In this document: positions 16,575-36,087 of the stretch, piece after piece
How positions within the stretch are numbered: position 1 is the stretch's first letter
Layout of the letters: each line of letters starts with the position of its first letter
Source of the DNA: Octopus sinensis
Lineage: Eukaryota
Length of the DNA: 64,000 nucleotides
Reading direction: 5' to 3'
Assembly (NCBI RefSeq): GCF_006345805.1
Contig: NC_043014.1
Span: 6,386,001 to 6,450,000, forward strand
Position numbers and translations under genes: made by a program
The notes under the pieces: model-generated
Seen by the model: the letters and a program-made list of their open reading frames with translations, nothing else
Database searches by the model: none
What the model was told of the DNA's origin: nothing

Positions 16575-16907
16575 ATCGTGTTGAAATGACAAGCCTAAAA
16601 CCATTCGAAGGATTTGGGGAAGATGGACCAACTCAAATGAATATAACATGTCACCTTGAAGCAGAAGACTTATCATTCTTCAGACTCAGACGTAACAATG
16701 AAGTCGTTGTTGATATTGGTTTCCACGATGGTATGGGGTTTTTTGAACTTGTTCGTGCTCTGAATGGTTTCGACTGCAACTTACCGCAATCGAGAACAAT
16801 TAATGGAGTATTAAAATGCTGGAAAGAAAATCTAGATTGCGCTGATGCAGGATCCTATACGTGTGAGATATCGGATGCAAAGAGGTCCAAATCAAGGATG
16901 CTAAAAG
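16575..16907 (+). CDS. Ig-family gene 1, exon 2 (V-like Ig domain)
   Basis: ctag acceptor, gttaat donor, 333 nt, phase 1-1. B-strand Cys (NITC) and D.GSYTC F-strand motif. Confidence 0.85.
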
Positions 16908-17010
16908 GTTAATTTTGTTTCATTTTAGGGAGAAAAAAATAGTAACACTCTTACTGCTAATACTACTAACACTACTACTACTTATAATAATAATAATAAT
17001 AATAATATAG

Positions 17011-17400
17011 GCGCAGGAGTGGCTGTGTGGTAAATAGCTTGCTAACCAACCACATGGTTCCGGGTTCAGTCCCACTGCGTGGCATCTTGGGCAAGTGTCT
17101 TCTGCTATAGCCCCGGGCCGACCAATGCCTTGTGAGTGGATTTGGTAGACGGAAACTGAAAGAAGCCTGTCGTATATATGTATATATATATATGTGTTTG
17201 TTTGTGTGTCTGTGTTTGTCCCCCTAGCATTGCCTGACAACCGATGCTGGTGTGTTTACGTCCCCGTCACTTAGCGGTTCGGCAAAAAAGAGACCGATAG
17301 AATAAGTACTGGGCTTACAAAGAATAAGTCCCGGGGTCGATTTGCTCGATTAAAGGCGGTGCTCCAGCATGGCCGCAGTCAAATGACTGAAATAAGTAAA
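17011..17400 (+). mobile_element. Second SINE family (gcaggagtggctgtgtggtaa head)
   Basis: Head with ggttccgggttcagtccc, internal (TA)/(TG) tract, tail ggcggtgctccagcatggccgcagtc. Confidence 0.85.
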
Positions 17401-18085
17401 AGAGAAAGAGAAAAAAATAATAATAATAATAAAACAACAACAACAACAACAACAACAATAATAATAATAAAAATAATAATAATAATAAATGCCGTGATGC
17501 AGTACCAGGCAGTGGCTCTCATCGCTTCTGATCTTAACTGGTTGGAAGTGTTATCATGTACATTGTATTATCATGTGTTATCATGTACATTGGTATAAAA
17601 GATGGGCTACAGCAAATATTCTGCTCAATACCACAGATTTGCTTGTCAGTTTTTTTACCGTAACCAGTTGAGCATGTCCCTTAGTGGCTGACGATATGTG
17701 CATCTCTGATCACCATAGCGAGCAAAATGCTTACCGTTATTTCGATCGTTCCAACATTCTGAGTTGAAATACCGTCGAGGTAGATTTGCCTTTTTCCTAC
17801 CCAAGAATATCCGATTTATTAGCTTTGGTGGTTCGGCCAATATGCACTAGAGCGTCCAAAGAATCCCTACATTCGCTCCCCCAGTTATAGCCCTATTCTA
17901 TAGTTTTATAGCTACAAAGATTAGTTGAAGCCCTGGAAACAGTAAACATATTGCATAGTAACATGTCATCTATTTTGATTAATGTTCAAAGTTTTCGTTT
18001 TATATCAACATCGCAATTTGTGTCAAAGCATCCATCCAGTATGTTATTTTGAATCTTATTATCTTAAAATATATTTTCTCTACAG

Positions 18086-18427
18086 TGAAATCTTTTGTCA
18101 AAAGGCTTGACCATATTAATACACCTTTAGAGACGAAGGAGGAGAAGAAGGAGGAGAAGAAGGTGTCTACCTTCAGCTGTTTGGTATATGCTTCTCCAGA
18201 TGCTGACAAAACTGTCACCTTTAGATGGACTGTAAAACATAAGATTAAAAACGCTAAACCACAGATGACAGACAAGAAAATACTTCTTCCGAAAACTGAC
18301 CAACATTGCGTACCAGTACAGTCGCTATTTAAACACGCGGTAACTGATGAAGACAAAAATGGAACAAGTATCTCATGTTCGGCATTTGGGAGAACACTTT
18401 CAGAAGACGTGAATATCTACGGTGCAA
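18086..18427 (+). CDS. Ig-family gene 1, exon 3 (C-like Ig domain)
   Basis: ttttctctacag acceptor, gtaggc donor, 342 nt, phase 1-1. Cys...Trp...Cys pattern (FSC, TFRW, ISC). Confidence 0.8.
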
Positions 18428-32293: not shown

Positions 32294-32396
32294 ATGGTGA
32301 CGACGACGACGACGACGACGATGATGATGATGATGATGATGGTGATGATGATGATGATGATTATATCTGTGATGATACTTCCATGCTCGTCACTCA
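32294..32396 (+). CDS. Ig-family gene 2, exon 1 (signal peptide MVT7M7VM5IISVMILPCSSL)
   Basis: Paralog of 13385-13469, phase-1 gtaagt donor at 32397, upstream in-frame ATG at 32231. Confidence 0.75.
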
Positions 32397-33231
32397 GTAA
32401 GTTTAGATTAAAAACAATAAATTTATCTCTTCAACATTTTCTCTCCCTTCTCTCGCACTTACTCTCTCTTTTTACTGTTTCTTTCTCTGCCATGCTCTTA
32501 CTCGTCATATATATATATATATATATATATATATATGTATATATATATATATATATATATATATATATATATAATATATATATATATGTATATATATATA
32601 TATACTATATATATATATATATATATATATATATATATTATATATATATATAAGAAAAGTTAAGTTTGTAATGTTTTTAATTCTCATCTCACTAAATTTA
32701 TCCAGCTATTGTGTATCTAGTACACTCTTCGCCTTGAATGTAATGATATATGTATAATATATGGCGTGTACTGGTACACCGGCGATTATAATTAATTTTA
32801 TTGTATCGCATTTATCTTTGTTTATATATATATATATATATATATATGCATATGTGGGCACAGGACGTCATGACACGTGTACAACAAAGAAATACGAAGT
32901 ATGAGTATATGGAATATGAAATATTTTTTCGAACAACAAAAGATACAAAGGGAAAACAAGACAAGCAACATAAAGAACGATTTTGCGGTACTTCGTATTT
33001 TTTTTTATACACGTTTCATGACGTCCTGTTTCCACATATGCATATATATATATATACGTATAGATGTATGTACATATACGTATGTATATATGTAGACATA
33101 TATATATATGTGTGTGTATATATATATATTATACATATTATATATATATATATATAATTATATATATAATATATATATATATATATATATAATATATATA
33201 TATATATTATATATATATATATATATATATT

Positions 33232-35111
33232 GATAAAACGGTAAGATAACAAAGGAAAGAAAGAGACCTCAATATTATGTAAATAGAGGAAATTTATCTA
33301 TACAATATGTTACATTACTCGGTAGTCAAGATAAAACTCTGAGTTTCAGATGCCGAAGTGGAAATCCACAACCCCATCTCTTCGGTTATCTGGCTATTTG
33401 AAAACGTTATGAAAAAATACCGTTAAATAAAGGGAAATTACTCTGTTATTACTCTGCTTGCCTGCGTACTTACACATCGCTCGCATTTTTCGTCATAAAA
33501 ATTATGTAAAAATTATATAAAAATACATAAAAAATATATATAAAAAATATATAAAAATATATAAAAATATATAAATTCTTCTTGTTCTATCTGTTTTCTT
33601 TAGGGGACCAAAAACGTAACAGAAATTTAGTCACATGTGGGCATGATCCGAAAAGCTCTGTCCTTGTATTTAGACATGTAGTAGGGTCTAAGCTGCTTTT
33701 CCAGATAAGCCATCTCTCCATGTCGCATAGACCGCACCTTCCGCTGCCGTTAGTATAGGGCTTACATCTGGCCAAAATCTTCCATTGTATGTTATAATCG
33801 ACACCTTTATCTCTTAAAGACCAAATATGATTAGATAATTGTGTCGCTTTTCTTTTGTTTACGGTAGCTTCATATATGATGGTCTTGGACATGCAAGCTC
33901 CATTTAGCGGGCACAATTCTTTATTCCTGCATGAACAGCTGTTTTCTTCTTGTGTTTTTTGTATGTTATGTTTGATTATGTTTTTAAAATTGGTAGTTGA
34001 ACTAAAACTAATTTTTAAATTGTGTCTATTGAAGAGTTTCCCTATAAGTATAGTTAACTGGAAAATGTCTATCTATCAGTGCTAGGAAATATTTACCTAT
34101 ATTGAAGGCCACCTCGGGTGAGTAAGGGGGCGTAAACCAGATGACCTTCCTTTTTCTATTATTCCTTTTTCCTTACTGTTGGGCTAGTGATAGGTGTATA
34201 TTTTATTTTTTCGCTAAAACCACTATCTTTTAAAGCCTTATTATAAACTGGGGCAACGCTATTGAAGATGTCCTCATCAGATGAGAGGCTAGAAATCCTC
34301 TTACTAATATTTTTAACTAAATTTTTGAATACTATAGGGGGATGGCATGAACCTACATTAATATAACTTAGTCTATCATTGGGCTTCCTATAAGGCTTAT
34401 AAATATTCTTATTAAGATCTAAGGAAACGTCTAAGAAATTGACAACCGTCAGGTTAGTATCTATAGTTATACTAAGTCCGAAGTGTTTCATTAACTGGAT
34501 AATATCCTTCCTAAAACGATCTTGTGCTGGTCCATTTGTATTAGCTGTTAAGGCGAGGGTATCATCTTTGTAGATGGTGAAATGTACGTTAGGGAATGTC
34601 TTACCTAAGGTATCTAGGAGAAAAGGTCCAATTAGATCACAGATGCCTGCCCCATCATATGAACCCATGCTCACATCGAAAGCGCCCTCTGTGTCGGTGT
34701 TTTTTACCCACTTTGCGTTCTCACTGAAAAGTAATGTCTTTCTAGCATGGAAGATTATGTCCTTATCATTGGTACTAATTTCTATGAAGTCACTAGCGAA
34801 GATGAGGGCTTTATCTAGCAGTTCTTTAGAGATAGAGGCATAAAAATCAACAATATCGAATTGTGTAAACCTCGCTTTTTTCTTATTCTTAATAGCATTA
34901 AACCAGTCTACGACTAAATTTCCTCTATTTACATAATATTGAGGTCTCTTTCTTTCCTTTGTTATCTTACCGTTTTATCAATAAATCACCTCCCGGACGA
35001 CGTTATTTTCAACTAAGAGCAGATAACCGAAGAGATGGTGTTGTGGATTTCCACTTCGGCATCTGAAACTCAGAGTTTTATCTTGACTACCGAGTAATGT
35101 TACATATTGTA
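33232..35111 (-). mobile_element. Penelope-like element fragment (RT + GIY-YIG) with terminal inverted segments
   Basis: RT MGSYDGAGICDLIG...YKDD (34159-34674); nuclease region CPLNGAC...IIYEATV...LSNHIWSL...CGLC (33587-33916). Confidence 0.82.
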
Positions 35112-35754
35112 TATATATATATATATATATATACAATATGTTACATACACTTGTATGCATATATATACATATATCATTTATATTACCATATAATTGAACG
35201 CCACGCATCCTCTTCCAACTAAGTATTTTTCTTGCAAATACATATATACGAGAGTGAGTCGAAAAGAAATGCCATTTTGTTTAGGACAGGTAGAATCATC
35301 AACAAAGGAACATGTATCATACATCGAAATGAAGCTGGTCCTCTGCGTATCACATCCCTACTCCTCAACATAGTCACCGTTTCTCTCAATAGCAATATTC
35401 CACCAACGAATGAGAGCATATAAACCCATAGATAGATAGATAGATAGATAGATAGATAGATAGATAGATAGATAGATAGATATATAGATAGATAGATAGA
35501 TAGATAGATAGATAGATAGATAGATAGATAGATAGATAGATAGATAGATAGATAGATAGATAGATAGATAGATAGATAAATAGGCAGACAGACACAACCG
35601 AAAGAGCTACTTATAGTTTCATGTTTTTATGATACTTGATCAGATAACATTCTGGTTTCGCGTCTTAAGTAGAAGCGATAATTAAATCTCTTTGAGTAAT
35701 TTTTTCCGTCCCATTTTTCGTGTATTCAATCATTGATTTGTTCCTCACCCATAG

Positions 35755-36087
35755 ATCATGTTGAAATGACAAGCCTAAAACCATTCGAAGGATTTGGGAT
35801 CAATGGACCAACTCAAATGGATATAACATGTCGTGTTCAAGCAGAAGACTTATTATTCTTCAGACTCAGGCGTAACAATGAAGTCGTTGTTGATATTGGT
35901 TTCAACGATGGTGAAGGAGTCTTTGAAGTAATTCATGACCTGAAAGGTTACTACTGCAACATGCCGCAATCGAGAAAGATTAATGCAGTATTAAAATGCT
36001 GGAAACCAAATCTAGATTGCGGTGATGTAGGATCTTATACGTGTGAGATATCGGATGCAAAGTGGTCCAATTCAAGGAGGCTAAAAG
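35755..36087 (+). CDS. Ig-family gene 2, exon 2 (V-like Ig domain)
   Basis: atag acceptor, gttaat donor, 333 nt, phase 1-1. DITC...DVGSYTC; about 76% aa identity to the gene 1 exon. Confidence 0.85.

Follow-up and report, generated by a model that had tools for sequence, protein, structure and literature searches.

A tandem family of V-like immunoglobulin genes in Octopus sinensis with homogenised introns and probable diversifying selection on its ectodomain exons

The DNA analysed here, called the window below, is a stretch of 64,000 nucleotides of Octopus sinensis scaffold C18 (C18:6386001-6450000, in a genome of 2.72 Gb), and positions given without a scaffold name are counted within it. 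Comparison of the window with itself revealed three tandem repeat units, each with its own open exon of 333 nt, which belong to the tandem paralogues g1 (LOC118766831), g2 and g3 (LOC118766832); a fourth close paralogue, g4 (LOC118761863), is found on the unplaced contig C12040. The interval 16575-36087 runs exactly from the start of g1 exon 2 to the end of g2 exon 2, the pair of exons in which a first-pass annotation had seen a signature of diversifying selection. We consider it probable, with some reserve, that these genes belong to an octopod-restricted family of surface proteins with immunoglobulin (Ig) domains, which evolves by tandem birth and death, homogenisation of non-coding DNA and diversifying selection on the ectodomain exons. 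The support for diversifying selection on the ectodomain is good for the family as a whole, moderate for exon 3 of the window genes and only marginal for their exon 2. The decisive evidence for it comes from a cluster of paralogues outside the window, and the proof offered by the codon tally of the window copies is weak. The gene models are as follows.

13322..13469, + strand: g1 exon 1, start codon and signal peptide, phase-1 donor (spliced coding sequence equal to XP_036366553.1; alignment of the three copies)
16242..16574, + strand: 3' end of g1 intron 1, non-coding and homogenised (corresponding tracts in g2, 35440-35754, and g3, 60626-60950)
16575..16907, + strand: g1 exon 2, V-set-like Ig domain, 333 nt, phase 1-1, five Cys (splice sites, AlphaFold2 model)
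18086..18427, + strand: g1 exon 3, K/E-rich linker and second Ig domain, phase 1-1 (match to the coding sequence, two-domain model)
19138..19232, + strand: g1 exon 4 (coding part and stop), Ser/Gly-rich stretch, then hydrophobic C-terminal tail (helix predicted at residues 287-303)
32231..32396, + strand: g2 exon 1 (alignment of the copies)
35755..36087, + strand: g2 exon 2, V-set-like Ig domain, 333 nt, phase 1-1 (AG/GT splice sites)
40789..41103, + strand: g2 exon 3, second Ig domain, shorter than in g1 by two in-frame deletions (21 and 6 nt; alignment)
41698..41816, + strand: g2 exon 4, with a 1-nt deletion near 41737 (alignment)
58387..58531, + strand: g3 exon 1, as found in the genome (alignment of the copies)
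60951..61283, + strand: g3 exon 2, V-set-like Ig domain (splice sites, alignment)
C18:6450244-6450567 and about C18:6451389-6451483, + strand: g3 exons 3 and 4, past the window end (alignment)

All three copies of exon 2 have an AG acceptor, a GT donor and phase-1 flanking introns. The spliced g1 coding sequence (13322-13469 + 16575-16907 + 18086-18427 + 19138-19232) is identical throughout to XP_036366553.1 (305 residues; P0040), and the database lists no separate protein for g2. Behind the signal peptide, the protein has a V-set-like Ig domain encoded by exon 2, a second Ig domain from exon 3 and a short hydrophobic tail from exon 4. Full-length members of the family measure 285-305 amino acids, no Pfam domain is recorded for any of them, and fibrinogen and chitin-binding domains are absent from these proteins, which consist of the signal, two Ig domains and the tail. 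The AlphaFold2 model of exon 2 (pLDDT, the per-residue confidence score, 93.1) has nine strands, A, B, C, C', C'', D, E, F and G, with a C'/C'' region that includes residues 42-50 and 55-61. Its top fold matches in the PDB are VHH/VH domains, with template-modelling (TM) scores of 0.6-0.73 in a library rich in antibodies, and the two-domain model is most like V-C ectodomains, e.g., those of butyrophilins and Fab chains. C25 and C96 of exon 2 stand 71 residues apart, within the spacing of the B-strand and F-strand Cys of V-set domains (about 65-75), and D90, Y94 and C96 (a D-x-x-x-Y-x-C motif), the five Cys and a few further positions do not vary among 32 family members. The family alignment has no column for the strand-C Trp; this strand is F-F-R-L-R-R-N in the window copies and F-x-L-x-x-N across the family. 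Pfam scans (V-set, ig, Ig_2) of the three window exon translations gave no match, and only 6/32 family members gave weak ones (best E=3.5e-4), none reaching the gathering threshold; the best match of a family profile in the PDB was a T-cell receptor (TCR) alpha V domain (E=0.002).

The C-terminal hydrophobic run ends two residues short of the stop and is preceded by a Ser/Gly-rich stretch in g1, g3, g4, the Octopus bimaculoides copies and others. No cytoplasmic residues follow this run, and exon 4 probably encodes a glycosylphosphatidylinositol (GPI)-anchor signal, to judge from its sequence. The 1-nt deletion in g2 exon 4, relative to g1, g3, g4 and the O. bimaculoides gene ObiB, shifts the frame of the tail and makes it seven residues longer and hydrophobic still, which may reflect either a degenerating copy or an error of the (long-read) assembly.

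In O. bimaculoides, the orthologous cluster consists of ObiA, ObiB and ObiC and lies downstream of an HNOB/HNOBA/guanylate-cyclase gene. An open reading frame (ORF) at window 1678-2154 (+) encodes part of a guanylate-cyclase catalytic domain, and this shared cyclase neighbour indicates that synteny is conserved. The trees of exon 2 and exon 3 both have the topology ((g1,g2),ObiA),((g3,ObiB),(g4,ObiC)), and thus the split between g1, g3 and g4 is older than that between O. sinensis and O. bimaculoides. Within orthologue pairs, the O. sinensis branches are 2-3x longer than the O. bimaculoides ones (g3 0.09-0.13 vs ObiB 0.04-0.05).

The claim of the first-pass annotation was built on a comparison of g1 and g2 exon 2, and its counts were reproduced exactly: 27 replacement codons, 3 synonymous-only codons and 41 nucleotide differences, the latter in 30 codons. 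We likewise found the segments FFRLRRN.EVVVDIGF and CWK.NLDC.D..SYTCEIS invariant in all three window copies, and we confirmed that the variable residues are clustered (~16-34 and ~51-79), in segments that the selected codons of the paralogues described below overlap. The inference drawn from the tally is another matter. Nei-Gojobori counting yields 9.7 synonymous differences at 69 sites and 31.3 non-synonymous differences at 261 sites, and the ratio of non-synonymous to synonymous divergence (dN/dS, or omega) is 0.84 (NG86, Z = -0.43) or 1.03 (maximum likelihood). Because about 79% of the sites are non-synonymous and synonymous changes are hidden in multiply-hit codons, a tally of 27:3 does not mean a dN/dS above 1. 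Neutral simulations matched to 41 differences produced a mean of 6.7 synonymous-only and 29.5 replacement codons, and a result of at most 3 of the former and at least 27 of the latter had a probability of about 0.08, too high for the tally to count as an excess over chance; with omega set to 0.3, a result as extreme was never seen. The g1-g2 counts exclude ordinary purifying selection on exon 2, but neutrality fits them.

Site models were fitted to seven sequences, the four from O. sinensis and their three O. bimaculoides orthologues, with a purpose-written GY94/F3x4 codon-likelihood program (models M0, M1a, M2a, M7, M8 and M8a), each data set being treated as a single recombination partition. 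The results, with the statistic of the likelihood-ratio test (LRT) between M2a and M1a, were as follows.

Exon 2: M0 omega 0.75 (vs 1, p=0.11); LRT 6.6, p=0.037; M8-M7 p=0.030
Exon 2 without g2: M0 omega 0.745; LRT 5.18, p=0.075
Exon 3: M0 omega 1.35; LRT 25, p=4e-6
Exon 3 without g2: M0 omega 1.31; LRT 18.60, p=9e-5
Exon 3, gap-free core: M0 omega 1.215; LRT 14.72, p=6e-4
Exons 2 and 3 together: M0 omega 0.98; LRT 25.51, p=3e-6; 22% of codons at omega 2.9

As a null check, 48 data sets were simulated under M1a; the largest LRT was 6.58 and 0/48 reached the exon 2 value. The comparison of M7 with M8, which the first-pass annotation had named among the ways to check its claim, lends exon 2 marginal support, as does that of M1a with M2a, and the latter depends on the inclusion of g2. 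In exon 2, 7% of the codons fall in a class at omega 3.8 and 36-40% in one at about 0.06, and the latter class, about 40% of the exon, indicates that the gene is constrained and not dead. Three codons of exon 2 have a posterior above 0.8: 15 in the A-B loop, 33 in the B-C loop and 53 in the C'-C'' loop. When mapped on the predicted structure, the variable sites of exon 2 appear enriched outside the strands (35/48 vs 29/62, p=0.007), with a posterior omega of 1.12 vs 0.67. The earlier comparison with framework and complementarity-determining-region loops would fit the predicted V-set fold. The variable sites of exon 3 are evenly spread, with no loop enrichment (p=0.84).

Much clearer evidence was obtained from cluster B, seven younger paralogues at C18:36.29-36.50 Mb whose V-like domains are 73-86% identical. 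Their V-like exons are all 333 nt long and align without gaps. In pairwise comparisons dS is 0-0.08 and dN 0.07-0.19, with omega from 1.5 to infinity and Z up to 5.4; the pair L016-L018 differs by 31 non-synonymous and 0 synonymous changes. The downstream intron (400 nt) is 1-5% diverged, in agreement with dS. For the V exon, M0 gives an omega of 3.4 and the comparison of M2a with M1a an LRT of 45.6, and the ratio of non-synonymous to synonymous differences per site (pN/pS), summed over 21 pairs, is 3.6 in the V-like exon and 1.5 in the second Ig exon (LRT 11.4, p=0.003). Because a pairwise excess of dN over dS needs no tree, recombination cannot produce this signal. The selected codons, mapped by hand to g1 numbering, are 8, 17 and 18 (strand A end/A-B loop), 34 (strand C start), 49-61 (C'-C''-C'' region), 69-74 (D-E loop), 82 (strand E end), 101 (F-G loop) and 108 (strand G).

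These data bear on the possibility that constraint has only been relaxed, i.e., that redundant young duplicates, among them a decaying g2, drift neutrally with a dN/dS near 1. Such drift would accommodate the g1-g2 ratio of 0.84-1.03, the compatibility of 27:3 with neutrality and an exon 2 M0 omega that does not differ from 1, and g2 in particular combines the exon 4 deletion with the lack of a database protein and a faster exon 3. It does not accord with the large class of nearly frozen exon 2 codons, with the reading frames still open, the canonical splice sites and the full set of five Cys in the seven clade members and 30 fetched V exons, or with the fact that every exon 3 indel is in frame. 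The preference for M2a over M1a in exon 3 persists without g2 and on the gap-free core, and drift cannot produce the excess of dN in cluster B, several-fold over dS and over the divergence of the introns. We thus regard relaxed constraint by itself as an unlikely explanation.

The second line of argument in the first-pass annotation was that exon 2 is roughly twice as diverged as the adjacent upstream intron. Its value of ~6-7% for that intron agrees with ours (8/113 aligned nt, 7.1%). Intron 1 as a whole is 9.5% diverged between g1 and g2 (580 alignable nt) and the three introns together 9.7%, and the excess of exon 2 over all alignable introns shrinks to 1.3x (12.3% vs 9.7%, Fisher p=0.19). 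Exon 3, at 18.4%, is significantly more diverged than the introns (p=4e-5), and the 3' flank differs by 1.9%. The g1-g2 synonymous sites are elevated as well (23/135 vs 140/1994, p=1.5e-4). Between g1 and g3, the upstream intron differs at only 1/115 and 7/150 sites (0.9-4.7%) and exon 2 at 84/333 (25%), with a dS of 0.48, and the same intron stretch differs at 8/115 and 17/149 sites between g1 and ObiA (Fisher p=0.002 vs g1-g3). Non-coding divergence (K) is 0.07-0.14 between paralogues within a species, no larger than the 0.11-0.17 between orthologues, and exon dS is 0.20-0.44 for paralogues vs 0.15-0.21 for orthologues, which gives paralogue ratios of 2.6-3.5 for dS/K and 1.9-3.5 for dN/K. 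The copies of one species also resemble each other more closely in exon 1 and its 5' flank and in exon 4 and its flanks. A paralogue K no larger than the orthologue K, despite the older split of the paralogues, indicates homogenisation, which affects the non-coding DNA, the signal exon and the tail exon but spares the two Ig exons. Homogenised introns account for much of the contrast between exon and intron without any selection on amino acids, and for the elevated synonymous sites too.

Concerted evolution might then suffice on its own, with conversion tracts stopping mechanically at the diverged Ig exons, which would simply display the true, older age of the duplicates. The low g1-g3 intron divergence beside an exon dS of 0.48, the relation of paralogue K to orthologue K, the 1.9% of the g1-g2 3' flank and the fact that synonymous sites of paralogues are raised as much as replacement sites are all as expected from such a process. 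Nevertheless, it leaves unexplained an omega near 1 on a constrained fold as well as a class of codons with omega >1. Conversion cannot lower the intron divergence of orthologues, yet their replacement sites keep pace with non-coding DNA (0.136 vs 0.124), and because about 40% of the codons are frozen, the remaining ones must change faster than neutral sites. In cluster B, the introns (1-5%) and synonymous sites (0-8%) agree, and dN reaches 7-19%. The orthologue and cluster B evidence makes concerted evolution a part of the best explanation and not a replacement for it; as the sole cause it seems improbable to us. A mutational mechanism that raises both classes of sites in the Ig exons, whether exon-targeted hypermutation or templated micro-conversion from diverged paralogues, is very improbable, because, although exon dS exceeds non-coding K between orthologues (0.163 vs 0.124, p=0.03), the differences are clustered within codons (41 in 30) and the derived g1 bases at 43-44 and 77-78 match g3, no conversion tract within the exons is significant among six sequences, dS in cluster B is as low as intron divergence and leaves no general exon-specific excess of mutation, and the downward bias of K from introns selected by BLAST can explain the 1.3-fold difference.

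The pattern of exons more diverged than introns is therefore the combined product of homogenisation and selection, and in the older set g1/g2/g3 homogenisation gives much of it. The methodological lesson is that codon tallies and exon-versus-intron contrasts over-read selection where paralogous introns are homogenised. The original claim is partly supported: diversifying selection is seen in the family, in cluster B, and in exon 3, which lay outside the comparison of the first-pass annotation, with a marginal case for window exon 2; the codon tally and the intron contrast do not stand as proof of it. We propose that genes of this family would arise by tandem duplication, some of them decaying later (birth and death), and that gene conversion or unequal crossing-over would repeatedly homogenise the promoter, signal exon, introns and tail exon of neighbouring copies. 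The two ectodomain exons would be left out of this process and gain replacements at a rate above that of neutral sites, and in the V-like domain these would concentrate in the A-B, B-C, C'-C'', D-E and F-G loop regions and along the C'' edge strand. Selection would favour novel residues where a surface receptor is exposed. The product of a member would be a small cell-surface protein with two Ig domains that ends in a hydrophobic tail; some members have a transmembrane helix and a cytoplasmic tail in its place.

Several points weigh against this proposal. In whole-exon comparisons of exon 2, dN/dS is 0.46-1.03 in 15 pairs (six sequences); it is significantly above 1 in none of the 15/15, the result that the first-pass annotation itself had said would count against it, and Z is never positive. 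The exon 2 evidence is thin, as the site-model p value rises from 0.037 to 0.075 once g2 is left out, and codon 15, one of its high-posterior sites, is a three-base change partly like g3 that could be one micro-conversion event. The codon-model code is purpose-written and checked by null simulation alone, and the window clade comprises seven sequences only. A test of the pairwise homoplasy index (PHI) type hints at recombination within exon 3 (p=0.02), which can inflate site-model tests; a GENECONV-style tract test of exons 2 and 3 in six sequences found no significant tract after correction (best uncorrected p=0.015 of 15 pairs). Because g2 carries the exon 4 frameshift and has more derived exon 3 changes than g1 (33 vs 20), part of the g1-g2 signal may be due to relaxed constraint. 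The synonymous sites of orthologues (pooled 0.163) exceed their introns (0.124, p=0.03), which selection on amino acids alone does not predict; the intron blocks were selected by BLAST and K is biased downward, which could account for this 1.3-fold difference. Lastly, the function and GPI anchoring that we assign are deduced from sequence.

The family is considerably larger than the window suggests. Searches of the O. sinensis genome with two different protein queries gave 35 and 42 matches to V-like exons, and the union of both lists holds at least 45 distinct ones. They form an array at C18:6.40-6.55 Mb, which holds the window, and a larger one at C18:36.05-36.88 Mb, with further V-like exons on three unplaced contigs, one intronless copy on C1 and a single match on C3. 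All of the fetched V exons (30/30) have open frames. In the large array, V-like exons at C18:36318960-36319293 and C18:36519186-36519522 are frameshifted over two frames and have in-frame stops; these two are likely pseudogenes, consistent with birth-and-death turnover. The intronless copy, LOC115221679 (L007:1384-2349, C1:167.3 Mb), is a full-length member, 99% identical to P0004, in which a transmembrane helix and a cytoplasmic tail of 34 residues replace the short hydrophobic tail, and it may be either a retrocopy or the ancestral form. On C3, a partial g2-type 5' region with exon 1 (L036:1541-1708, C3:59645767-59645930) is truncated past its microsatellite and adjoins unrelated ORFs. An additional copy of exon 1 lies downstream of g3 at L037:7148-7297 (C18:6457148-6457297) and differs by 5% from g4 exon 1. 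From this likeness and an N gap at L037:9218-9317, contig C12040 with g4 probably belongs downstream of g3.

Beyond O. sinensis, a search of 1.84 billion representative proteins gave 33 matches, of which the real members are all from Octopus species or Argonauta, and a profile search of 5.8 billion clusters found Octopus only. Look-ups of 90% clusters returned no O. vulgaris orthologues of g1, g3 or g4, and an exact look-up of the g1 protein in public assemblies returned no cDNA contigs on record that would attest its expression. A literature search by topic, LOC number and protein accession found no description of this family, and a 2026 review of invertebrate immune diversification does not list a cephalopod system of the Ig superfamily (IgSF).

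Two other forms of organisation were considered and rejected. The V-like exons are not cassette exons of one gene in the style of Dscam or protocadherins, since every O. sinensis unit has its own exon 1 and terminal exon. Nor are they rearranging V segments, because no recombination signal sequence follows the 3' end of six V exons, which have G/GTTAAT or G/GTTAGT donors and are spliced to exon 3. The size of the genome (2.7 Gb) and the RefSeq Octopus origin of the proteins leave no room for a bacterial or viral source.

Some gene models join exons of neighbouring units. In O. bimaculoides, isoform X2 of LOC106878953 (L043:10001-23300) joins ObiA exons 1-3 to the ObiB terminal exon; N gaps at L043:13648-14425 and 18589-19276 could conceal a terminal exon of ObiA's own. 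In O. sinensis, the RefSeq proteins of g3 (P0042/P0043) start with an N-terminus (GSRSSFSLPTN...PCSSL) that fits g2 exon 1 (32231-32396) and not g3's own (58387-58531), and the length of their Thr/Met run is unmatched by any copy fetched; this g2-type N-terminus may come from inter-unit splicing or may be an annotation artefact. As all internal exons are of phase 1-1, joins between neighbouring units remain in frame, and with such models in two species the arrays may produce combinatorial isoforms by read-through and inter-unit splicing.

The Thr/Met run is encoded by an (ACG)n(ATG)n microsatellite in exon 1 (window 13385-13440, 32294-32365 and 58450-58500), which gives poly-Thr/poly-Met in the signal peptide and is unequal in length among all paralogues. 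Long tetranucleotide and dinucleotide microsatellites occupy much of the introns. A 184-bp tandem repeat at window 1-960 recurs in g1 intron 1 at 14450-14965 with about 85% identity. Reverse-transcriptase-like ORFs, judged by eye from their translations to be of non-LTR (long terminal repeat) retrotransposons, lie at 20455-22135 (-), 34159-34974 (-), 37223-38991 (+), 43276-45000 (-) and 52643-53119 (+), and g2 intron 2 owes its length of 4.7 kb to one such ORF inside it.

Proteins of immune, self/non-self or gamete recognition typically change at such high rates. We infer that the proteins would be cell-surface receptors for ligand recognition with a fast-changing partner, of pathogen, self/non-self or gamete type. 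Cephalopod genomes are known for expansions of protocadherins, zinc fingers and G-protein-coupled receptors (GPCRs), and to our knowledge no diversified recognition receptors are known in cephalopods. It is tempting to speculate that octopods possess in these genes, at least 45 of them in two arrays, a large germline repertoire of their own of hypervariable V-type receptors for immune, self/non-self or cell-identity recognition, unrelated by sequence to the systems of vertebrates, hydrozoans and gastropods, but we hold so far-reaching an interpretation to be doubtful. An octopod-only V-type Ig family with dN/dS well >1 and conserved signal and anchor exons is a candidate for immune, allorecognition, gamete or neuronal recognition, and it is a compact, testable set of genes.

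Among known systems, the octopus family resembles CEACAM/PSG, CD2/SLAM (with GPI-anchored CD48 and CD58) and butyrophilin/B7, as these are commonly described, in the order of a V-type and then a C-type Ig domain, in one phase-1 exon per domain, in GPI-type or transmembrane tails, in tandem clusters and in a fast membrane-distal domain. It differs from them by the lack of detectable sequence homology, by its restriction to octopods, and by a V domain with five conserved Cys and no C-strand Trp. The Hydractinia Alr1/Alr2 and Alr-like genes likewise form a large cluster of lineage-restricted, divergent V-set-like IgSF genes, which sequence models barely detect and structure prediction reveals, as is the case here, and the membrane-distal domain of Alr is hypervariable. 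Alr proteins are, in contrast, transmembrane with two or three domains and signalling motifs, and their role in allorecognition was shown genetically, whereas the octopus family is known here from sequence. Biomphalaria FREPs, which are molluscan and for which somatic diversification has been claimed, and amphioxus VCBPs are also invertebrate IgSF multigene families with diverse Ig regions, but they are secreted and carry a C-terminal fibrinogen or a chitin-binding domain, respectively, neither of which occurs in the octopus proteins, where exon 4 supplies a hydrophobic tail only. In snake-venom phospholipase A2 (PLA2) isozymes and conotoxins, too, the signal exon, introns and untranslated regions are more similar than the exons coding for the mature protein; these are secreted toxins, whereas the octopus proteins would be membrane-tethered with an Ig fold, and the pattern here arises partly from non-coding homogenisation. 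Finally, the V segments of jawed-vertebrate Ig and TCR share with the octopus genes a leader exon, a phase-1 intron, a V exon, C'/C'' strands and variability in loops equivalent to the complementarity-determining regions. The octopus V exon differs in having, in place of a recombination signal sequence, a GT donor spliced to a constant-type Ig exon, and the diversity of the octopus family is instead germline and multigenic.

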